This document shows, piece after piece, positions 5,332 to 21,940 of a stretch of DNA of 64,000 nucleotides (positions are counted from its first letter, which is position 1; each line of letters begins with the position of its first letter). Source of the stretch: Adineta vaga. Taxonomy: Eukaryota; Animalia; Rotifera. The notes beneath the pieces are model-generated. The model did not search any database. It had not been told where the DNA came from and was given only the letters and a program-made list of their open reading frames with translations. The position numbers and the translations under genes are program-made. The stretch spans positions 12,710,001 through 12,774,000 of the forward strand of contig CP075492.1 of the NCBI GenBank assembly GCA_021613535.1, given 5' to 3'.

Positions 5332-6366
5332 TTATTTCTTTATTTTCATTTTTGATTCTGTAGTTGTCACTTGTACTGCTTTGCCTGATGTGAACCAAGC
5401 ATCTGCATCTTTATTCTCCTTTGGAGTTGGAATATCAGCACGTGAACGTTTCTTTTCTTCAGCAGAAATCTTATAGTATTCATCACGTTGACGTAATAAT
5501 TCTTGATTTAGTTGTCCATCTTGAGTGAAAGCCATCATCAATTGAGGCACACCGAAAGGAAGTGAATCACCACGATCGACTTGCCATGCTAAAGAAGAAA
5601 AAAACAACATCAATATTCTTGAAATCTTCATTTTTATTCTCGGAAAAAATCTATCACTTACTATGAAATGTTTTTCCATAAGTATGAATTAATTCTTTCA
5701 TAACTTCTCTTTCGGCAATATCTGGTACACCAGGTGTAACTAATGTACCACTTTTAACTTCATAAACATGTGAATGCCATAATTTCTTTTCTTCCGAGGG
5801 TAATTGATTGAAAAGTTCTTCAGAAATGATATACTCAACACCAATAAGACGTGCATCTGGACGATCACTATCATAGATAACACATTGTCGAACATCTTGG
5901 TTAATATGCGAACAATAATGATGAGCAATTAACTGTCGAGTCATATCGCCTAAGGTGAAAAATAAATTATTTTACTTTTCTGAGAAACTCATTATTGATT
6001 ATTTACCGGAATAAAAATGGAAACCACAGACATGTTGATGAATAGTATTCACTGGTGCAAAATGACCCTAAATAAAGACGATATTTCTCTTCGATCCGTG
6101 ACTGATCGATAGTTACATACTGCCATTCGAGCACCCATATCAAGAATATGTCCTACGATGTATCACAAAGAAAATATCAATCAAACAATCAGATTAAAAC
6201 TTCTTCTTTTCGAAATACCTTTCACAGTCATTTTTGATCCTGGTGTATGATGATCATGTTGATGTCCACTATGTTGATGTTCGCTTGATACTGGTTTCCA
6301 TTGAAAGACTTTTGCAGCACCTAGACCTGTACCGAAAGCTAATGCATAACCTAACAATCTTCGCAT
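5332..6366 (-). CDS. DUF1264 / oil-body-associated protein (OBAP)-like
   Basis: 5 exons; motifs HVCGFHFY, RQLIAHHYCSH, QCVIYDS..ARLIGVEYII, LWHSHVYEVKSG, TYGKTFHTWQVDRGD.LP.G.PQLMM. Confidence 0.9.
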
Positions 6367-6508
6367 ATTAATCTATAATTTGTGATGAGATATATATTTC
6401 TATTTATTGATATCTCTGTTTTGTTTTTGTTTCGAATGTTCGATTAAGAGAAAAAAAAAGCAACTATACATTTTTCACACATATACATAATACACAAGAA
6501 AAATGTCT

Positions 6509-8885
6509 CTAATGAGCTATTGTTTTATGCAAGAGAAGTCCTGCAACTGATCCGCGTTCATTTAAAGCTGTTCGTAATCGATTTTCTTTTTCAATCAGTT
6601 CTTCAAAACGCATTAACTAGAAGAAGAAGAAGAAGAAAGAAAACTGTTCTACAAAATATTGAATGAATAATATTCAAAATACTTCATGAAGTCGTTCAAG
6701 ATCAATTTGAGCACGTCGTCGTCGATCCCATTTGAAATGTTTTGAACATAACCTTTTTGGTGCTGTACATAATTCATCGGATATTTCAAATAAATTTCTC
6801 TCTAATGGACATCCACATGCTTCATCAGGACTGATCTGAAAGAATCGAATGTACATACATTTTTCATTTGTTAAAACAATTAAATCAAACTTACTTTTGG
6901 ATCTCGAGCATGTTCTGGACAAATAACTTTAAGTCGTTTACAGTAAAGATTATTTGTTCGATCATAATTATCACAGAATAAACCTTCAATATTGGATTTC
7001 ACATTTGATCCATACGAGACTTGACTTTCAAACTGAAATATCAATACTCATTATATTTATCTTCAATGTTTAGCACTCATATGACTGCTTACAAACAAAT
7101 ATCGACTATAATTTACTGCTCTTTTTATCACAGAAGAAACGTACCCAATACCCTTTTCTTCAGAGACTAACCACGAAAAAAAGGAGAGAAGAACTGATAT
7201 GACTCATCATCGTGTGCCTCAAAAGTGTTTCTAGTCCGAAAATAGATATTCGATAGTTAACAAAGAACTGTTTCTTTACCCGAATAAAACATTTATCAAT
7301 ATGACGTATATAAGATTTTTGACTAATTTCTTGATTACATAAAATACAAAAACACATGCCATCATGTTCATCATTAGTAGTGTCATATTTCTGAAGTATA
7401 AAATCATTTATACAGATATTGAGTATATAATCCACTTACATCCGCATCTTTTGTCGCTTTTAATTGCTTTCCACGTTCAATAATTTCATCTAATTGTCGT
7501 TGTCGTTCATCGAGTACTGTTAAACGTTGTTTGATTTGATCAATTTCAATTCGAATATCTTCAATTGATGCTTTATTTAAAGCATCAGCAACTGAAGGAA
7601 TTGTTTGCCATTGCATTAAACGCATTGGAAGAAATTGGAGAAGTCGACTGCAATGAATAAATTGAGAATAAAATCAGACAAAAAAGAACCAGGTTTTTCG
7701 TATACTTTCGTGCTAATTCTAATCCACATTTCTCTGAACAATATTTTGACTCTGAACGAGCTTCAAAAAGACAACCTGGACCATAGCATTGTCGAGCAGG
7801 AGGTTCCGTTGTACGACGTCGACGGTTTCGGGCACTAAGATTTTTTGTATCATCCTAAATAGTCCTCTTTAATGCTTTATGTATTGTCAAGAAAATAAAA
7901 ACTAACCTCATCGTTTAAATCTATTTGTGGTTCTCGTTTGAGGGTAGTTATTCCACTTCCACTAATATTTCGTTTTCGTTTTTCACTGGTACCGACATTT
8001 TTAGTTGTTAATGTACGTTTTGTGGTATGTTTTACTTCATGATCATCACGTGATGACAATGGAGATTCTTGCTGAGCACCAGTTGAACGATTTATATTCG
8101 AAGTATTTCCATGTAAAACTTGTTTTTGTCGAGACATAACATTTGCTGCTGATGATGACGATGAATCCGATTGATTACTAGTTGAATCTTCATTTCCAAA
8201 TTGATCCATACTATTTGAATGTTCTCGATTTTTTCGATCAATCTATAAAAGAAAAATAGGTTTTGAAAAACATAGTCATGATGTTAATCTGTAACCTACA
8301 GATGATGTGTCCAATTGTTTGGCGGAAGGATTTAATAATTCTGCTTCTTTACGTAATCTTCGCTAGAATAAAAATAATTGCTTTAATCTCTACTATCTCA
8401 ATAATAGAAGTATTTCTTCGATTCACATACAGTTTATTTTTATTATAAAAAGAGAAAGAATAATCGAAGAGAAAAAGCTTACCCGAATACATTTACTTAA
8501 TCTTTCTTCAATATCTTTTTGTGATTTGCTATATTTAATTTGTAAACTAGGTTTCTTATCTATTGAAATATATTTTCTTCAAAATAACATTTATTCAAAG
8601 TAAAACTTACGTCGACATTGATGACAAAAGAAGTTTTCGATTTTTCCAGATTCTTTTTCGCTCATACCAATACATATACCATGATACCAAATATTACATG
8701 CATCACAAGCACTACAAAAACTTATGTATATTCAATCAAATCTAATCCAATATTTCTTACATCATAAATGTCGAACAATCACTTGATCGACATAAACAAT
8801 ATAAAGTTTGTCCATCACCTAGACTGGAATTTGATAATGATTTTTGACTCAATGATCCGGACGGATGTTTTAATATTGATGACAT
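6509..8885 (-). CDS. CXXC1: CXXC1/Cfp1/Spp1, COMPASS PHD-finger subunit
   Basis: PHD: YCLCRSSDCSTFMICCDACNIWYHGICIG; QCYGPGC...SKYCSEKCG; C-terminal zf-CpG_bind_C region ending GLLLHKTIAH*. Confidence 0.9.
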
Positions 8886-8954
8886 CTGAAAGATATCAAA
8901 AGAAACCAGTGCCTAATCTTTTTTTTTTACAAACAAGAAAAATGTTTTTGTTTT

Positions 8955-9209
8955 TCAAAAATCAAGTAATAATTGCATAAGAATTTTTTCTAAATGTTGA
9001 ATATCCACTTGAATTGTTCCTTCAGATGATGCTTGTTGAATAGTACGTGTAAATGCTTGAGTAATAAATACAAAAATCAATTCAGTAAATAATTTCACCA
9101 TATCACTTGATAAACGTGAAGATTTCTCTTCTGGTAGAAAATGTTTTAATAATTTCGTGATTAGTTCAGTTTTAAGATAATCATTATTACGATTGGTTAT
9201 TTCACTCAT
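8955..9209 (-). CDS. CENPX: centromere protein X / MHF2 (histone fold)
   Basis: 84-aa intronless ORF ending VDIQHLEKILMQLLLDF, the CENP-X C-terminal signature. Confidence 0.9.
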   Translation of the reverse strand: MSEITNRNNDYLKTELITKLLKHFLPEEKSSRLSSDMVKLFTELIFVFITQAFTRTIQQASSEGTIQVDIQHLEKILMQLLLDF

Positions 9210-9220
9210 CTAGAAAGAAA

Positions 9221-11279
9221 TCAAATATATTTTATTGAAATATACATAATCAAAATAGATAGAAAATAAGAGAAAAAAGAAGTTTCTATTAATAAAATCG
9301 AAGAAGAATGATTGTAATCTGATGACCATGTATTATTATCATCAGAACATTTTCTATTCAAATCAGTTAAATGATCCGGTAAGATTAATAATTCACGTTT
9401 GGCTGCATTAAATAATGGAAATGGACCTTCATTACAAACATCACCTATTTTATCATCAAGATCAAATGACCAAATAATTACACCACCATAACCATGATCT
9501 TTCAAATATTTCATCTAATATAAAGAAAAGACTATTTGAACGAATGGAAAGAAATCGTTTTATATTACTTTTAATGTAACACTACGAACATTATCAAATC
9601 CAATCCATAGAGATTTACTCGAAACATATGGAACACTCATTTCACGATGCCAATAGACACGGTTACTTGGATTATTTTTGAGCATTTCACAGATCTATTG
9701 AAAAACAAGAAACTCTCAATAGATTTTAATTTAAAATTTACTTCATAATAAGACAACACTCCTGCTTCCCGTGTATATTTTCCAGCTTCAGCTGCACTTG
9801 CTTTGACACCAATGGATGATTTTCTTCGAGCTACTGATTTTCCATTTCCCATTCCTGTTTCTCCCATCAACGAGAAAGCTCTCCCTACAATGATCATACA
9901 AATTCAAACTAATCATCTAATAGAACAAACCATAAGCTGAAAGACCAATATTTAGTTTTTCTTTTGGACAGCCTAATTCTTCCCATACATGCATGGAACT
10001 ATTAATATTCCATTCACGAAATTTTTTTCGTTCATTACGCATTGCATACAATGGACTGTTATGTCCAGTTTTTCCATCCCAACTGCCATGATAATCATCT
10101 AGATAATATGAAAAGAAATGAGAGACAAATGAATTGTAAGTTGATTTCACGAATTCATTTACATGTCATTACAGAGACAAAATCAAAATATCTAAATAGA
10201 ATAAAGAAATGATTCAATCAGTTGAATAGAAACTCCTTATCATACTTGCAAACTTCTTCGACTTCATAACCAGCTTCAATTCGATGTCGTGCAGCCGCTA
10301 AAATAATATCAGTTAATAGAACAATCTTTTTCTTCGAAAAATCTCTTTGATATATATACCTGTGGCACATGTAAGTAATAATTTTTCTTTCCCTGTTTCT
10401 TCAGCTTCATTTTGAAAGACTTCACTTAATTTCTATTTTGAATTCCATTTACAATCATTCTCATCATTATTCTCTCATACCTTTACTAATTTTGTATAAC
10501 CCGTTTTAGAATGTGGTTCTGCTCCTTGATCTTTTGCACCTGGGTACTCCTGATTGTCGAAAAACAAAGATAGATATATATATATATCTTACTAAATCTA
10601 AAGGAGAATTCATTTGATCTATTTACCCAATCTAAATCTAATCCATCAAATTTATTATCTCGTAAAAACTTCACGCTATTCTTAGCAAACGTTTTTCTAT
10701 ATAAAAAAAATGATATTTTTTCAATTTCTTTTATTAAATAAAAACAAATCATCACATACATATTTGCTGCCGTTTTTGATACATCATTAAATCCACGTGA
10801 TGCATGTGTCCATCCTCCGACACTCAATAGTACACGTAGATCAGGATTCGTTTCTTTTAATTGTAATATTCGTTCATACATGCCTTTAGAACTTGCAGTC
10901 CATCCTTTTAAATCATCTTCTTCATAAGGTGCGATCGTTAAACTTTCCAGAACTTTACCAAAAGCAAAATTAATATGTGTACATAGAAATGGATCGATAT
11001 CTTCTGGAGTTAAGCGACTAATATTATCATATCTTTTTGCTGCCCAGTTAGCAAAATAACAACTAAGTTTAAATTATAATGACGAAAATACAAAGAATGA
11101 TTCACGTAAACTTACACACGTCGATAAACAAATGATGCATTTGATGTTTCATTTTGACAATTTCCTCGAACTAAAAACGAAAAAGATAAAAATTATTATT
11201 TATTTGATTTTAAATTATAATTACCGTGTTGAATGATTAACAAGACAATTAACGTAAGAGAAATTGAAATACTTGTCAT
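9221..11279 (-). CDS. GH18 chitinase with signal peptide and C-terminal hydrophobic (GPI-like) tail
   Basis: CYFANWA, LCTHINFAF, VLLSVGGW, catalytic DGLDLDW/EYP split by an intron, YDYHGSW, GGVIIWSFDLDD; multi-exon. Confidence 0.92.
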
Positions 11280-11493
11280 TATTGTACAATGACAACTAAA
11301 TTATTTCATTCTTCGTTCGTTGAAATCAAACAAAGCATTCTAATCTCTTTTACTTTCGTTTTCAATACGAATGAATGTGTGTATATATTTGTCAACAAAC
11401 GATTGAAGAGAGAAAGACAACGAGACAAAACGATGAATGTCATAGAAAAAAAAAGCAACAAAACTAATTTATTTATTTGTTTTTCTTTGATCT

Positions 11494-12194
11494 TTAGTGT
11501 GGAATACCAAACATTGAAAAAACAATACGTGTAACAAAAGGAGCTAAACGTACAATAACTGAACATTCAAAAATGCCAAAGAAAATGCCTGCGATTACAT
11601 CAGAAACATAATGTCGTCCTAATATGACTCGTGAGACAACAACAAGACTCAACCAAATGACAATAATTGGAGATGGAATACGTTTGAAAAAGGATGTTTG
11701 AATAAAGTAGAAAAGAAGAAAAACTGCTCGAGATGTATGACCACTCGGAAAAGAAAATTTATCAGGTCCAATTGATAGAACATCATCATGATTAACAATT
11801 GGTCGTGATCGACGTGTTAAACCTTTCGCTGTTCCAATGATAGCAATATCAAACATGAGACCGGTAAATAATAAAATGAAGTGCATTGCTTCATGTATAG
11901 AGGTATAATGTAGTGCGATCATAATAATTGAATACGGTATCCAAACATAACCTGAACCGGAAAATTCCAAAGCAATTGCAAATTTTCGAAAAGATATATA
12001 CGCTGAATCTAATCGAGCACATATGGCCCAACGAAGTGAGATTTCATGATCGTAGGAATTAAGTTGTTTCAACATCTGAAAAATGTTATGAAGAATAAAC
12101 CCATATAATATTGACATTTATTTAATTTAACAAAAGCAGTTGAAAGAAAAGATAGTAATCTGGAAGCTAGACCTTTTTTTGTTGTTGCAATCAT
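11494..12194 (-). CDS. PLPP6: PAP2-family polyisoprenoid diphosphate phosphatase (PLPP6-like); alternative start at 12075
   Basis: KGLTRRSRP, DKFSFPSGHTSRA, SRVILGRHYVSD motifs; putative 56-nt intron 12076-12131. Confidence 0.85.
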
Positions 12195-12264
12195 TCTTGA
12201 AATGTAAGACTCCTTTTTTCTTAAAAAGCCACACACACACACAAATACGTAGAGAAATGCAGGA

Positions 12265-15200
12265 TCAGACATTTTTATCACTCTCCTCTTTAGTTATAGT
12301 TTGTGATGATGGTGATGATATTAAAGCAGTTGTATAATTAGCAGTTGATGCCGAAGTATTGTTATTATTATTAGTATTCGTACAACAAGGTGTTGGACAA
12401 CGTGATGATAAGAAATTTTGATGTTGACCACTAGTAGCAGCAAAATCACAATGATCTAACATTTTTAATAAATCAGCTGCAGATGGACCACCATGATGAT
12501 GATGAGAAGATGATGAAATAGAGTTTAATTCAGTATTTGAACAAAGTTCAATCGCAGTTGTCAAATCAAATAGTTGAATAGAGCCTTTGAAGAAAAAGTT
12601 GGCATCAATTTTTATTTCTTCGAAAGTATTGAAACAAACCATTGTCATGACCAGTGAAAATAAATCGACGAGGACGTGTACTTAATCGTGATGGTCCTTC
12701 ACATTCATGAATTGTAAAACAACTGATTGGTGAACTATCTACCGAACGAACAACAGCAACTCGTTTACCTTAACAGATAAGAAAATAAAACGTGATATTT
12801 AAAAGGCGAAAATAATACCTGTTGAACAAAATCTGACATAGATTTGATTTGTTTCAAATGGAACTACTTTTTGAACAAAAACTTGTTGATCATCACGATC
12901 ACCATATGGTCCTAAATAAAGTTTATATATTTTTCCGAAACATTATTTCAGTTCTTCGTTCATACCAATGTCCTAAAATAGAAGAAATAGAGAATATAAT
13001 ACAAAAAGAATACTATTTTACTTACATTGCCAGCAGTATAACTAGTGATTGATCGCGCTGGTTCTAGTGATACAATACGATAGGAAGAAAGTGGAGTAGA
13101 TCCTATAGAAAAATTCATAGTGAGAAGTAAGAAAAATTTATATTATCAAACCTGGTTGTGTGGAAATCATGCCACGAAAACGAGTAACATTCCATGTACG
13201 AACATGATTATTCGATGCACATACACTTAAACAAAAATAAATGTTTGATTTAAACAGTATAAGAGAATAAACTTACCTGATTAAGTGTCGTTCGGAAAGC
13301 ATAATCTTCAAGAGAAAAATGATTGTAAGCATAGATTTGTTTCGTATCATCTTACCTTTGTGACTGGACTGCGATGAACACAGAATGTTTGGAATAATTG
13401 AGGGCTAAATATAAATCAGTATTAACAAACAAGTAACAGGCCATTCTATGTAAAGAATTTTAAGAGAAGATCAATACATTTTTTTCTTGAAAGTCTCTGA
13501 TCTTTGATTATCATAAGTCGCATTTGAAAGGGGAATCTACTAAATGATATCTATGCAAATCAATAATCGAACTTTAATTACCCATGACCAACAGTTTCTG
13601 GATGTTGTACTACAATTCGAATAATACCAGAACTTGTTCCATACGCTATTTCAATCCTAATCAACAAAAAGAAAAATATATATCGTCATTTTACATATTT
13701 CGTTCATCTTATTACCAATTGCCAGTTACACTTGTCTTCGGTGTTAAATAAACACTCAATGCAGTAATAGATTCACCAGCTGGATCTCTGTATTAGGAGA
13801 ACAAAATTATTCCTTTCAATCATAATACGAAAAATGTTTACTTGAATATTTCAGTAATTAATAAATCATTATCTTTCATTCTTAAAGGAAATTTTTGCAT
13901 ATCAAAATAATAAATTGATCCTGTTTCACTACCAAGTAATAGAAATGTTCCAGCCTAGAATATTCAAAATTTCCTCTTCCATTCATTTGATCATTCCCAA
14001 TGATGATGAAAAGAAAATACTTACAGTATCAAAACTTAATATTCGTGTTAATTCTTGTGTTTGCCATTGTTGAGAAAGTGAATGCCATACGCCAACTTTT
14101 CTTTCGTCACCTGTTGCGACTAATTGTGAATTAATAAAAAATAAATTGTCAACTGGTCCACCAAATGCAAATGTGCCAATAAGTGTATGAATTGATGCAT
14201 CAACAATATTCCAAAGTCGAACATTTGTTCGAACAACAATAGCTAAGAGTTTCGATTCTCGAAGATTGAAATTGGTTTCTGGTGATTGTTGATTAGCTGC
14301 TGCTGCAGCTGCTGTTGATGATGATGAACGAGATGTTATCGCTAAACGATAAATATCATCGGATTGAACTTCCGATTCAAACATTAGTTGCCAACCACTT
14401 GTATCTTTCATTTTATAACACATGACAACTAAAGAAGCAAATTAGACATTTCTTTGTAGAATAAAGATTCGTTTTTTTTTGTCGTTCGTACCATTGTTTG
14501 AATAAGCAGCACTAATCCAGTTATGATGTCCAGCAAGAAGAATAACACTTGCTGCGGAAGAATTTGATATGGGAGGATGATTATCGATAAAAGCACCAGT
14601 TGATTTCTGACGTAAATGAGATGAAGACGGATTTGATTGATGAGTTGCCCAAAGAACAGAATCAGTTGAAGATGCACGTGAATGTCCACGACTTACGCTT
14701 GGTGCCGATGGAATTGCAGAACTAAAGTCTGTTGTTGATGATGCTCTGCAAAACAAATGAAATAACTAGCTAGCTAACAATAATCCTATTGGATTATAAA
14801 TATTACCGAAAATCACCAATTTGTGATGCACTACGATTCAATGTTTGTAGCATCATATTATTTAATCGTAATGCTGAACCCGGTCGAACAAGGTTTGTTG
14901 GTTGACAGATCGGTGGTTGATATACAATTGCTTGTGGTAATGGAACTTGTGTTGATTCAAATGAAATTGGCGTATTCACTGAATGTGGAGGATTAATATA
15001 TCCATTAAAAAGTACATCGCCACATTGACTATGTTCAAGATCTTCACATAATTGTAAACGACGAATTAATGGTTGAACGCCATAGAATTCACATTCATGT
15101 TTTAACATATGAAGATCACAACCATTGATATCTAAATAAATGGATCAAATCGTAGAGAAGAAAATAATTCAATCTTACCAAGTTCTTTTGTTCGTAGATA

Positions 15201-15395
15201 ATTTAAAATAATTGAAAATAATTTCGGATCACGATCGATAAAAATTGCTCCTTGTTCATCTCGATTTGTTGATATGAGACCATTGAGCATAGCAGTAAAA
15301 AACGAATCCGATATCCATGTTAATGTTTGTCGACTGGTAGAAAAACGTTGACCACCAACATTTAAATTAATAATATCTGCTGTTTGATGTGGCAT
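12265..15395 (-). CDS. KCTD3: KCTD3/SHKBP1 BTB-WD40 protein
   Basis: [21 protein letters not shown]...[10 protein letters not shown]; [66 protein letters not shown]. Confidence 0.92.
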
Positions 15396-15450
15396 GAATT
15401 CTATCTTTCTAATCTATTTAAAACATCTGAAAAAATAAAAATAGAGTCTT

Positions 15451-16552
15451 TTAATAATTATTAATTAATGATAACCATTCTTCATTCGCTTCTGAACATT
15501 CGTTTGTCTCATTTTCATTTATACGAAATTGAAATGGTTCATAACCTAAGAGAATAGATCGATCATTTAACCATGAAAATAATCCTGTTCCTGCAAATTC
15601 TGCTAATGGATTAACTTCACAAATATAAACTTGATATTTATTGCTCGAATTCTCAACTAAAATCAAGTCTAAAACACAATTTTCATACGGAATTCGTTCA
15701 AGAAGATTTTCTATTCTGAAGAAATTGTCAATCGTTTCTAAAATCAATGTCTTCTGTTCGATTAAAACTCTATCTACGATATATTCATTATATTGAGTGA
15801 GAGCAGTGAATTTACGTTTGTGAATAAAGGCACGAAATTCACTTTTTAAATGTCGTCGATCGAGAAGAAATTCACGGAGAATCAAATTTAACGATAAAGA
15901 TGATTTAAGATCATCTTGAATACGTTCACTTGCGAGAAGAAGTTGAACTGCGTGGAAACCATCATGAATAGCAAGAATACGAATAGTTGCTTCATCAAGC
16001 GCAATTAGTTTTTGATTCCGTTCTAGAATGAATGAATTCAATATTAAATTGTAGAGAAAACATTAGTAACATACCAGATGTATTATCAGATTTTAATGTG
16101 TTTAATACTTGTTGAAATAGTTGTTTGAATTTATTTCTATTCAATAATAAAACTGCATCTTTTGGACTTCTTGTTGATAAACGTACAAACATCGGTCGTT
16201 TTATATCACATTTATCGATTGTATTAGCTAATTCTAATAAATCAGGATATTTCTGAAAACATTCTTTTGTTTTTTCATCATCATCATCATCATTAGTAGT
16301 AGTAGTAGATGAAAGACTCTTAAAGAATTCATGACCATTTCGAAGTGCAATGATTTGATTTTCATTCATTGATACAATTGTTGATGGAAATGTCCACTGT
16401 TTGATAGAGTCATAATAACGTTCGAATTGTGTTTCATCCATCATTTTTCGATATGTTTCACTATCAGGACATAGAAGTTGTTCTTGAATTTTTTCTTTTG
16501 GTTTATTCGTTGAACGTAATCGAACGGATTTCAATTGATCAGCCAAAGACAT
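15451..16552 (-). CDS. Cdc123-like (R2K clade) ATP-grasp protein with N-terminal WH2-like motif
   Basis: FVRLSTRSPKDA, SERIQDDL, EFRAFIH..FTALTQY, ICEVNP..GTGLFSW; one intron 16023-16074. Confidence 0.8.
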
Positions 16553-16558
16553 TTTTAT

Positions 16559-18170
16559 CTAAAAAAAATTAGATAGTACAAGACAAGAATTCGTGCCACC
16601 AAAGCCAAAAGAATTCTTTAAAGCAAGACGTTTTTTACTATTCCATGATGATGATTGATCTTCAGAAATAATACTTATCGATGGTGAATCTTCTGAAGTA
16701 TCTTCGTTATTTTTATAATTTAATGTTGATGGACATCGAGCATGATAGCAAGCAAGAATAGTAAAAAGTGATTCGAGTGCACCAGCAGCACCAAGTAAAT
16801 GACCAGTATGACCTTTCGTACTTGAAACTAAAACATTGTTACTAGTCGATTGAAATAATTGTGAAATCATTTGACGTTCAATACGATCACCAATTGGAGT
16901 TCTATAACAAACAATAGGAGAATACGAAAATGTGAGAATATTTAATTTGCAAGTAACTAATAGTAGTATAATTGAAGAACGGATGTTTTCTAGGATACTG
17001 TAATGATTTGTGAATATTTCCTGTTATCTTACTCATATGCAAAGTCTGATCATATCATACTTACGACGTAGCATGAGCATTGACATAACCAATATCTTTT
17101 GCATTTACACCAGCATTATTCAAAGCATTTTTCATACAATTCAATGCGCCTATTCCACTTGGATTTGTAATATGACTTGCATCTGAACTTAGACCATATC
17201 CAAGTATTTCACCAAAAATCTTCGCTCCTCGTTTTTCAGCACATTCCAATCGTTCCAAAACAAGAATTGCAGCTCCTTCACCCATGACAAAACCATCTCG
17301 TTTTTGACTACATCAAATCCTCGAACTTTTCGAAAAAAAACAATAGAACTTCAAATTAACTTACGCAAATGGTCGCGATGCTAGTTTTGGTTGTTCGTTG
17401 AATGATGTAGAAAGCGCACGCATTCTCGCAAAACCTGAAATCGATATTGGATTGATTGTTGCTTCAGTACCACCACTGACCATAGCATCAGCATGACCCA
17501 ATCGAATCATATTATAGGCATCACCAATAGCTTGAACACCTGCTGCACACGCTGAACTATTGCAAAGCTAGAAACGAAAATTATTTCATACCTATTTGCA
17601 CGAAAGAACTTACATTAGGTCCTTGTAATTTATTTCGAATTGAAACATGTCCTGCAGATGAATTTGGTAAAACTTGTGTAATATAAAATGGACTCATGCC
17701 ACGATATGTTCCTTTTGTTTTCATTTGTTCCCACATTGAACATGTATTTGCTAAACCAGCCATACCATTTCCAATAGAAACACCAATTCGCGTTCGATCA
17801 TTTGCATCATTAAGTATCTAGAAACTATTTCGTCGATATTTTTCCAAAACAAAACAGAAATATTTACTTGACTTTGTTCAAGTGCTTCTTGTGCAGCAAT
17901 AATCGCAAATGCACTCGCTATTGACATTGATTTCAAATCTGACATACGTGTAAAATATTTTGAAAAATTCAGTGCACCAACTTCATCTTCATTATCTGAA
18001 CTTAATGGAACTCGACCAGCGACTTGACAAGGAATTCCTGCATATTCTTCTCCATTAAGTGAGGTAATACCTGATTCATTATTTAATAAACGTCGCCAGT
18101 TGAATTCTACACCAACTCCTAATGGTGATACAGCACCTAAACCAGTAATTACCACTCGACTAATACTCAT
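16559..18170 (-). CDS. OXSM: 3-oxoacyl-ACP synthase (FabF/OXSM, mitochondrial FAS II type)
   Basis: [21 protein letters not shown] catalytic Cys, [30 protein letters not shown]; multi-exon. Confidence 0.92.
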
Positions 18171-18232
18171 ATATCTAAAAATATTATGAAAAATTTTGAA
18201 AAAGAACAACAAGTTATCATTATCTGACGAAA

Positions 18233-19084
18233 TCATTTCGAGATATTAGTAGGACGATGATCACACCACGGTGTTAAGTTATAGTTACATTCAATATTTA
18301 CATCTAACATATTATATTCCACTCCGGTTTTAGTCTTTTGAATTGTTTTATTAATTATAGTATATTTAGTTGTGTTAAATCCCATTTCGGGATAGATTTT
18401 TCTACCAGCTACTTTCTGTTGACCATATTTGGCATAATCACGTTTATGTACATGTTTATCATGAATATGAGTAAATGTATTGGAAGAATTTGTCGATAAG
18501 TTATATGGACGATAAATTTTCATTCCGGCAAGTTTCATTCGAGCATATAAATTGTCATCTTCTCTACCCCAACCCCAATATAACGGTGACATACCATTGA
18601 CACGTTCAAAATCTTTACATGTAATCATTAAAATTCCACCAACATAAGTCGAATAATTATACAATGGATGATATTTTGGTGATGCTAAATGTACAGGACC
18701 TTTTTCAGGATAATCATATCGTAATTCTCGATAATTCAATGGAAGAAGATCGATATCATGCATAACAATATAATCAACAACTGTTCGAGATTCAATAAAA
18801 CCAATATTAATCAAAGCAGCTCGATTAAATCGATGTGTATCACTTTGATTAATAATCATAAATATATGATCAATAGCTTGTACATGAAGATATGCATTCA
18901 TATGAGGTAAAAATTGTTCTAATTCACTTGAACGGTTTCGAAATGGAACAATAACAGCTAATCGATGTTTCGGTATGGTATTTGTTTCATTCGTTTCTAT
19001 TTTTGATGAATACCAAAATGAGATGAGAAAGAATAATACACAATAAAGAATACCAATTCGAATTACAACACGAATTTTGAACAT
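18233..19084 (-). CDS. B4GALT7: xylosylprotein beta-1,4-galactosyltransferase 7
   Basis: type II TM, HRLAVIVPFR, FNRAALINIG, MHDIDLLP, YWGWGREDD, C..NLTPWC; intronless. Confidence 0.93.
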   Translation of the reverse strand: MFKIRVVIRIGILYCVLFFLISFWYSSKIETNETNTIPKHRLAVIVPFRNRSSELEQFLPHMNAYLHVQAIDHIFMIINQSDTHRFNRAALINIGFIESRTVVDYIVMHDIDLLPLNYRELRYDYPEKGPVHLASPKYHPLYNYSTYVGGILMITCKDFERVNGMSPLYWGWGREDDNLYARMKLAGMKIYRPYNLSTNSSNTFTHIHDKHVHKRDYAKYGQQKVAGRKIYPEMGFNTTKYTIINKTIQKTKTGVEYNMLDVNIECNYNLTPWCDHRPTNISK

Positions 19085-19463
19085 ATCATAGTATTTAATT
19101 GAAAAACAAATATTATATTATATACATCGAAAAGGAATGAATCAATTGAAAAGAATAAATTCGATCAACGAATAGAAATTCATCATCGACCTTTACAAAG
19201 ATTATCTTTCTCCTGACATCTGTTTTTTTTTTCATTCTTTCATATCTTTTTATCATTTGTTACCAATCAGTATTTTCTTTTTGATTAGAATTTCAAATAA
19301 AACAAAAAAGATTTTTCGACAATATTCATCGATGAATCATTCCGTTTCAACTTTCTCTATTGCGTTGCGTGCGTGCGTAGATAGATATACATCACTGTTT
19401 GCAAATGAAATGTTTGCATTGAATATAGTTTACTTTTCAGTTTTAGATCATAAGTCGAAAATA
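19085..19463. promoter_or_regulatory. putative bidirectional promoter between B4GALT7 and TFIIS
   Basis: 379-nt head-to-head interval at the 5' end of the nine-gene minus-strand run; position only. Confidence 0.45.
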
Positions 19464-20731: not shown

Positions 20732-20986
20732 ATGAGGATAACTGATAGGAAAACTGTGAAACATGGTAAGTATACATGTGAATAATCGAATGAGTTTTAA
20801 TTGAAATGATGTGTCTATTTTTAGGTCAATTATTGTACAACGATTGCATTTGTCATCGTATTAGCTTACTTTTGTTATGAAAAAAATCAATTCTATTATA
20901 TTTACATTTTTGTAACAATAAAAAGAAAGATTTTTCTTGTTATTTCAGATATATTTTAATCATTTTCAGTTTTCTTATTGATATCA

Positions 20987-21940
20987 ATGGCCGGTGGAAC
21001 AAGTAATAAATCAGCATCACAATTGATGGCTGAAGCAAATAAAAAAGCGAAAACAGCTGGTGGATTTTTTAATCGTATTATGGGCGCAGGTAGTACGGCT
21101 ACTGAAGATGCTCGTTCACTCTATGTTCAAGCTGGTAATGCTGGAAAAGCTGAAGGTGATTATCCAACATCTGTCGAAGCATATAAACGTGCATTAGATT
21201 TGAGTAGTGAAGATTACGAAAGAGCTCAAATGTATGAAGCAATTGCATCTTCATATAAAATGTTTGATATACCACAAGCGATTGCACCATTGACTCGTGC
21301 TGCCGAAATGCATATGTCACAAGGTAAATGGACAATGGCTGCTCAAACATTGGAAAAAGTTGCCGAATTATACGAACAATTGAATGATCTTGATAATATG
21401 ATGAAATGTTTGAAAGAAGCTCATCGATTTTTAAAACAAGAAGGACAAAAAGCAGGTGCTAATCGAGTACAAAAGAAAATGGCTGAAACACTTGCATTGC
21501 AACATGAATACATGCGAGCACAACAAGAATATGAAGAAATGGCCGATAAGACAAAAGATGATGCATTATTAAAATATGGTGCTAAAGATTTCTGGTTAAG
21601 GTAAGTCAATTAATCTTTCTTTCTTTCTTTCTTTCCAAATCTTCTTATCTATTGTTTCAATAATTGATATAGAGCAACAATGTGTGCATTATGTATTGAT
21701 GTTGAAAATGCCAATACTGCATTGAACCGTTATTTAAGTGATAATCCATTATTTGAAGAACGTGCATTAGAAGTGAAATTACTTCGACAATTGATTGCTG
21801 CTGTTGAAGAACAAAATAAAGAATTATTTTTAAAACACATCGATGACACACCCTTATCGCCATTACGTTCAGATCGTGTCTTTCGTTCTTTAGCAGATGA
21901 TATCGGCAAGAAAATCAACGGTGATGTTGATCTTAAATAG
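20987..21940 (+). CDS. NAPA: alpha-SNAP-like NSF attachment protein (divergent)
   Basis: LMAEANKK..GFF, LLKYGAKDF, C-terminal DLK; one intron after WLR. Confidence 0.8.

Follow-up and report, generated by a model that had tools for sequence, protein, structure and literature searches.

How do nine genes that lie almost end to end on one strand of a rotifer chromosome give rise to separate messages? We followed this question in a window of 64,000 nucleotides (nt) from Adineta vaga (assembly GCA_021613535.1, contig CP075492.1, positions 12,710,001 to 12,774,000; all coordinates below count from the first letter of this window), in which the genes B4GALT7, a beta-ketoacyl synthase (KAS), D123, a KCTD3-like gene, a PLPP6-like phosphatase, a chitinase, CENP-X, a CXXC1-like gene and an oil-body-associated-protein-like gene (OBAP) follow each other head-to-tail on the minus strand with a spacing of 6–214 nt (5332–19084). 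Re-measured from the sequence, the eight gaps, here called J1 to J8 in the direction of transcription, are 62, 6, 55, 189, 214, 11, 69 and 142 nt long; all except J4 agree with an earlier reading of this DNA (the sequence-only reading), which had proposed a long polycistronic operon of functionally mixed genes. Our best reading is that the cluster represents an operon resolved by spliced-leader (SL) trans-splicing, or two or three such operons that abut each other, using one SL class and possibly internal promoters. The SL, a bridging RNA contig and conservation partly bear out the earlier proposal, in which one promoter for all nine genes stays hypothetical. Co-oriented genes with intercistronic distances under about 250–500 nt are a mark of SL-resolved operons in animals and are found here, and by the criteria of the field, gaps of <250 bp together with an SL (PMC12460157), the cluster is one. 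For at least the tight junctions J1, J2, J3, J6 and J7, we consider a polycistronic organization probable and hold this with good confidence.

The published rotifer SL (GGCTTATTACAACTTACCAAGAG; PMC3795323, Table 1) is present in 42 copies in the genome (100.8 Mb in six contigs, ∼31% G+C), compared to 0 for a reversed control pattern. As is characteristic of a rotifer SL RNA, the 23-nt SL exon is followed by a GT donor, which reads GTAAAT in an example gene. The genomic copies start with T, whereas the SL in cDNA has an extra 5′ G that is probably the cap. Most of the 42 SL RNA genes form head-to-head pairs ∼154 nt apart, e.g., C1:2551160–2551336, and large arrays are found on C5. Weak Rfam matches pointing to a microRNA-like identity of the SL gene pair were caused by its palindromic layout and were discarded.

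RNA contigs from four runs of four studies (X1, X5, X11, and X13) were placed on positions 6250–12249, which comprise five of the eight junctions. The material consists entirely of assembled contigs, in which GT..AG introns are skipped and a 247-nt intron has zero depth, indicating that they derive from RNA. Loose ends were listed at only three places within this stretch, at 12077 (X5, X11, X13), 9211 (X5, X13) and 6374 (X5, X11). They read CTTGGTAAG(TTG) on the plus strand and correspond to the reverse complement of up to 12 nt of the 3′ part of the SL, with the last two SL bases supplied by the genomic AG in each case. All three sites coincide exactly with the AGs preceding the start codons of PLPP6, CENP-X and OBAP. 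The messages of these three genes are cut free by the 22/23-nt SL, joined at a YAG, which here and at the candidate acceptors of CXXC1, KAS, D123 and KCTD lies 0–31 nt before the ATG. At all three junctions the joined letters are those of the canonical SL, and no operon-specific SL was seen. The cap, and at J4, J6 and presumably J7 the entire 5′ untranslated region (UTR), comes from the SL. SL addition had been predicted at eight downstream AGs; this holds for CENP-X and OBAP, occurs at a different AG for PLPP6, and was not observed for chitinase in the four runs.

The RNA contigs also delineate the ends of the neighboring messages. At J6, the CENP-X start codon directly adjoins the verified SL acceptor TTTCTTTCTAG (AG 9211–9210), which leaves a spacer of only 11 nt (9210–9220). 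An AATAAA motif lies 21 nt upstream of this acceptor in the last part of the chitinase coding sequence, and a spliced chitinase contig stops 21 nt past this motif, at 9209, next to the site where the SL is joined to CENP-X. CENP-X contigs from three runs cover 8920–9211 with the SL at their 5′ end (loose ends listed for X5 and X13) and end in a genomic A-run at 8920, 33 nt before the CXXC1 acceptor TCTTTCAG (AG 8887–8886). This acceptor, supported by contig ends and kept in five genomes, adjoins the CXXC1 start codon at the end of the 69-nt J7 spacer (8886–8954). No SL letters were listed at the CXXC1 acceptor in the four RNA runs. Judged from their record lengths, the CXXC1 contigs of 1391 nt in X11 and of 1629 nt in X13 stop exactly at 8887, the A of the AG, which is consistent with release of the CXXC1 message by the SL. 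A fully cis-spliced CXXC1 contig of 1949 nt from X1 continues unbroken from 8761 to 9207 and thereby takes in both the 69-nt spacer and the coding sequence of CENP-X. Contigs of these two kinds are compatible with two fates of the RNA, one joined to the SL and the other left bicistronic and unprocessed. At J8 (142 nt, 6367–6508), the verified acceptor TTATAG (AG 6374–6373) is located 6 nt before the OBAP start codon, and CXXC1 contigs end near 6450, ∼75 nt before it.

Orthologous loci were retrieved through B4GALT7 and the PLPP6-like PAP2-family gene, yielding a comparison of six bdelloid genomes: A. vaga, Adineta ricciae, Rotaria magnacalcarata, and the genomes L041, L033 and L040. The B4GALT7 protein of A. 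vaga is 85% identical to that of A. ricciae; L033 and L040, which have ∼50% G+C and come from a single ENA sample, share 67% B4GALT7 identity with A. vaga and 68% with each other. Conservation of gene order across bdelloids, suggested earlier as a check, was observed in all six genomes and includes the TFIIS side: the divergent TFIIS gene is followed by B4GALT7, KAS, D123, KCTD, PAP2, in some genomes the chitinase, CENP-X, CXXC1 and in some genomes OBAP, with the A. ricciae contig stopping after PAP2. Seven of the eight junctions retain the gene order, the size of the gap and the place of the acceptor. At J1, J2, J3, J6 and J7 the YAG acceptor holds its position before each ATG and the remaining spacer sequence is not conserved; among the genomes compared, J6 varies between 11 and 47 nt and J7 between 51 and 71 nt. 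The J8 acceptor is kept in L033 and L040. These two genomes lack the chitinase, and their PAP2 and CENP-X genes are 75 and 34 nt apart (L033:17034–17110; L040:16819–16854), separated by a spacer with TTTCAG/ATG (slashes mark splice sites). The last gene of the cluster differs between genera, as OBAP follows CXXC1 in A. vaga, L033 and L040 and was not found by tblastn at this place in R. magnacalcarata (L031:17352–19938). In public Rotaria annotations several neighbors are fused into single gene models, namely KAS and D123 into a protein of 757 aa, chitinase and CENP-X into one of 548 aa, and chitinase and CXXC1 into one of 1074 aa; these models (L030:10910–13547; L032:2237–4871 and 10811–17352; L028:19517 onward), of which the KAS–D123 fusion recurs in two assemblies, are annotation artefacts arising from the tiny spacers.

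For the three upstream junctions, conservation points to specific AGs as the SL acceptors of KAS, D123 and KCTD. The candidate acceptor at J1 (62 nt, 18171–18232) is TTTTTAG/ATAT (AG 18176–18175), with YAG/AT kept in all six genomes despite gaps of 32–78 nt and an alignment with only 6 invariant columns of 96. Right after the B4GALT7 stop codon, a motif GTCAGATA(T) (18228–18221, minus strand) is kept in five of the six genomes and in the additional sequences L037 and L038. At J2 (16553–16561), the stop codon of KAS is a candidate for a double role, since the AG of its TAG (16561–16559) may serve as splice acceptor for D123, whose ATG follows 6 nt further on; the pyrimidine tract would be formed by the last two Phe codons of KAS. 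In six of six genomes KAS ends with TAG, and the gap is always 6–8 nt. At J3 (55 nt, 15396–15450; 33–72 nt across the six genomes), the candidate acceptor TTTTTTCAG (AG 15428–15427) is likewise kept in all six. A two-codon upstream open reading frame (uORF), ATG TTT TAA, directly follows this acceptor (15426–15418, minus strand), and uORFs of two to four codons are found at the corresponding position of all six genomes, which may reflect translational control of the KCTD3-like gene. Scans of metagenomes for SL–D123 and SL–KAS chimeras gave 0 matches, in a collection that may hold no suitable metatranscriptomes.

Under a strict definition of an acceptor (at least 7 pyrimidines in 9 positions, then AG/AT, at most 35 nt from the ATG), the motif precedes five of the eight downstream start codons, a property shared by only 3.6% of the window's ATGs overall (P ∼3e-6). 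Six of the eight acceptors proposed by the sequence-only reading are where it had placed them; those of PLPP6 and chitinase are not. AG/AT itself was rejected as a hallmark of trans-splicing, as 8 of the 15 cis acceptors in the cluster share it.

Pfam searches of the window, exon by exon, agree with the nine gene identities and the shared minus strand given in the sequence-only reading; the domains of the CXXC1-like gene were taken from its Rotaria orthologue. B4GALT7 (18233–19084; xylosylprotein beta-1,4-galactosyltransferase) is a single exon that matches PF13733 and PF02709 (Glyco_transf_7N/7C), and its orthologues carry the same name. KAS (16559–18170), a mitochondrial-type, OXSM-like synthase gene with introns, matches PF00109 (ketoacyl-synt), and its orthologues bear PF00109 and PF02801. 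It is followed by the D123/Cdc123-like gene (15451–16552; PF07065) and the intron-rich KCTD3/SHKBP1-like gene (12265–15395; BTB_2 and a WD40-like region), whose orthologues are 738–744 aa long with BTB_2 plus faint matches to WD40 families. The PLPP6-like PAP2-family phosphatase (11494–12075; PF01569), its start set by the SL junction, is encoded by a single exon of 193 aa, the same length as in its orthologues. The GH18 chitinase gene (9221–11279; PF00704, Glyco_hydro_18) has many introns, documented by spliced RNA contigs, and CENP-X (MHF2; 8955–9209; PF09415) is again a single exon (84 aa). The CFP1/CXXC1-like gene (6509–8885; PHD and CpG_bind_C) has 11 exons with introns backed by RNA contig joints. 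In its Rotaria orthologue (L031:13384–17352), PHD and CpG_bind_C matches are present and a zf-CXXC match is not on record. The cluster ends with the intron-containing DUF1264/OBAP gene (5332–6366; PF06884 and tblastn).

Upstream of the cluster, B4GALT7 has no AG acceptor close to its ATG and stands head-to-head with TFIIS, as had been noted before. The divergent region between the two start codons (19085–19463; 19084 for B4GALT7, minus strand, and 19464 for TFIIS, plus strand) is presumed to be a bidirectional promoter. It contains a CCAAT-type box, CTGATTGGT, at 19270–19262 and a conserved block at 19200–19165, and these blocks recur upstream of B4GALT7 in A. ricciae, in L037/L038 and partly in Rotaria. 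Two sequences of different source and species (L037:1–20 and L039:1–20) start at the same aligned base of a conserved motif upstream of B4GALT7. This base may be a transcription start; as the two sequences may be either RNA or DNA, it was kept out of the evidence for transcription starts. On the far side of the promoter, an alpha-SNAP-like gene follows TFIIS after ∼255 nt on the same strand (20733–20990, plus strand). The spacer between them contains AATAAA and, ∼20 nt further on, TTGTTATTTCAG/AT, an arrangement kept in A. ricciae and L041. TFIIS and alpha-SNAP may form a second operon that runs in the opposite direction from the same bidirectional promoter.

Several observations, some of them at the two longest spacers, weigh against a single polycistronic unit. 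At J4, the verified SL acceptor TTTTTCAG (AG 12077–12076; SL in X5, X11 and X13) directly adjoins the PLPP6 start codon at 12075, so that the spacer is 189 nt (12076–12264) and not 70 nt as previously noted. The acceptor formerly assigned to PLPP6, TTTCAAG-A-ATG near 12196, proved wrong, as the SL is not joined there and was found at 12077 in three runs; a short open reading frame starting from the ATG at 12194 is not kept as coding sequence in A. ricciae and was rejected. Within this spacer, a block at 12205–12192 on the minus strand (GCTTCCAGAATG in most species) is partly invariant in the six genomes and may represent an internal promoter, a 3′UTR element or a secondary acceptor. Just upstream of the block, A. 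vaga and A. ricciae have a (GT)n run. The J5 spacer (214 nt, 11280–11493) has neither a verified nor a conserved acceptor in the alignment and no SL loose end: SL was not found on chitinase in the four RNA runs, and the AG of the proposed acceptor ATTTAG near 11297, which carries no SL in these runs, is not kept in Rotaria, which disposes of this assignment. Instead, J5 contains ∼180 nt of non-coding blocks shared by A. vaga, L041 and Rotaria, and probably represents the chitinase's own promoter, or else a 5′UTR or conserved leader. Given the non-coding conservation in both spacers and the lack of a conserved acceptor for chitinase, an internal promoter is likely at J5 and may also be present at J4. 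Moreover, contigs speaking for a single primary transcript cross just two junctions, J7 (X1) and, at low depth, J5, and the two-gene contig at J7 may come from overlapping transcripts and does not prove single molecules. J1 to J3 lie outside the stretch covered by RNA and depend on conservation. The genes beyond the promoter (TFIIS, SNAP, a 141-aa gene and LIM) also keep their order across species, and therefore synteny alone is not operon-specific. Finally, no second copy of the cluster was found in the genome, where searches with five of the genes gave only distant paralogues with at most 43% identity.

The alternative that survives best is the strict version of the earlier proposal, one uninterrupted nine-gene unit without internal promoters, which we regard as rather unlikely. 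All genes are co-oriented with gaps of at most 214 nt, and a low-depth contig (11263–11496, X13) crosses J5 from PLPP6 to the start of chitinase, whose contigs are low in depth across the RNA runs. In L033 and L040, moreover, the absence of chitinase leaves PLPP6 and CENP-X at the short distances given above, with a normal acceptor. Such a unit is difficult to reconcile with the chitinase, which shows no SL or conserved acceptor and yet has a conserved block upstream, since an uncapped chitinase cistron would need trans-splicing to become a normal mRNA; the invariant block in J4 also speaks against it.

Less probable still are densely packed independent genes, each driven by its own promoter within the preceding gene or where that gene ends, for which the SL would only trim a short outron. 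SL trans-splicing serves monocistronic genes too, in bdelloids and in other animals, the conserved non-coding blocks of J4 and J5 resemble regulatory DNA, and neighboring genes differ in contig depth, an unreliable measure here. However, the candidate acceptor at J2 (6–8 nt) and the acceptor at J6 (11 nt) are part of or abut the upstream stop codon, so that a promoter would have to sit in coding exons. The J1, J3 and J7 spacers (32–78 nt) are unconserved apart from the acceptor, gaps stay small in six diverged genomes, and a spliced contig joins CENP-X and CXXC1. The idea that the AGs are ordinary cis acceptors of 5′UTR introns with non-coding first exons further upstream, which the sequence-only reading had named as a possible refutation and which could appeal to the YAG/AT look of 8 of the 15 introns in the cluster, can practically be discarded, because the SL and not genomic sequence is joined at 12077, 9211 and 6374, which excludes cis-spliced 5′UTR introns at these AGs, and no joints from upstream exons into these positions were listed.

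An SL-resolved operon, or a short chain of operons, could operate as follows. RNA polymerase II would start in the divergent TFIIS/B4GALT7 promoter and read through successive genes. J2 (6 nt) and J6 (11 nt) would act like SL1-type operons of C. elegans, in which the upstream 3′ end is the downstream acceptor, and upstream 3′-end formation and downstream trans-splicing would compete on each precursor. J4 and J5 probably carry internal promoters, and the chitinase would be a gene with its own promoter within the operon, either inserted or lost from some lineages. A more specific version is possible and is put forward tentatively: one unit transcribed from the TFIIS/B4GALT7 promoter, ancestrally with eight genes and with nine after insertion of the own-promoter chitinase, and one of many such units in bdelloids.

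No report of a rotifer operon was found in the full-text literature on rotifers, bdelloids, Adineta and Brachionus, which does not cover subscription journals, so that an earlier report is possible. The papers that were searched describe operons as unreported in rotifers. An older literature table marks rotifer operons as ‘ND’, and PMC12460157 names rotifers for trans-splicing in passing only and has no rotifer operon data. A conserved operon with RNA support would fill this gap and make rotifers the second gnathiferan phylum with operons beside chaetognaths. If the cluster is a single unit and one of many in bdelloids, Rotifera would gain its first documented operon, equal in length to the longest one of chaetognaths, and operons would appear either as an old gnathiferan trait or as a repeated outcome of having an SL. 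The idea that operons facilitate recovery from arrest (Zaslaver et al. 2011, cited in PMC12460157) could be tested in bdelloids, animals that survive drying. The cluster also illustrates gene gain or loss inside an operon (chitinase) or at its end (DUF1264/OBAP), and the fused Rotaria models indicate that bdelloid annotation needs operon-aware gene calling.

Among known systems, SL2-type operons of C. elegans share with the rotifer cluster the co-oriented, mixed and mostly housekeeping genes, an order kept among relatives, and upstream 3′ ends located ∼30–100 nt from the downstream trans-splice site. In contrast to these operons of another phylum, no dedicated SL2 is seen at the three verified junctions, all of which bear the canonical rotifer SL. 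The SL1-type operons of C. elegans have no intercistronic spacer. J2 and J6 resemble them in geometry, the candidate acceptor at J2 and the acceptor at J6 falling on or next to the stop codon and, presumably, the 3′ end of the gene before, and J6 uses the major SL; in the rotifer J2, however, the stop codon TAG itself is the candidate AG, in six genomes. Tunicate operons (Ciona, Oikopleura) likewise use one SL class, have little or no spacer and place the AUG near the acceptor; their SL and lineage are unrelated to those of rotifers. As in trypanosomatid units, the genes are functionally unrelated and downstream trans-splicing seems to be coupled to upstream 3′-end formation, whereas trypanosomatid units comprise tens to hundreds of genes and all of their mRNAs are trans-spliced; the latter apparently does not apply to the first gene of our cluster. 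In the chaetognath Paraspadella gotoi, operons were defined by gaps of <250 bp together with an SL, and the longest comprises nine genes (PMC12460157). The SL sequences of the two groups differ, but both are gnathiferan, neither shows an operon-specific SL, and all gaps of the rotifer cluster are likewise shorter than 250 nt.

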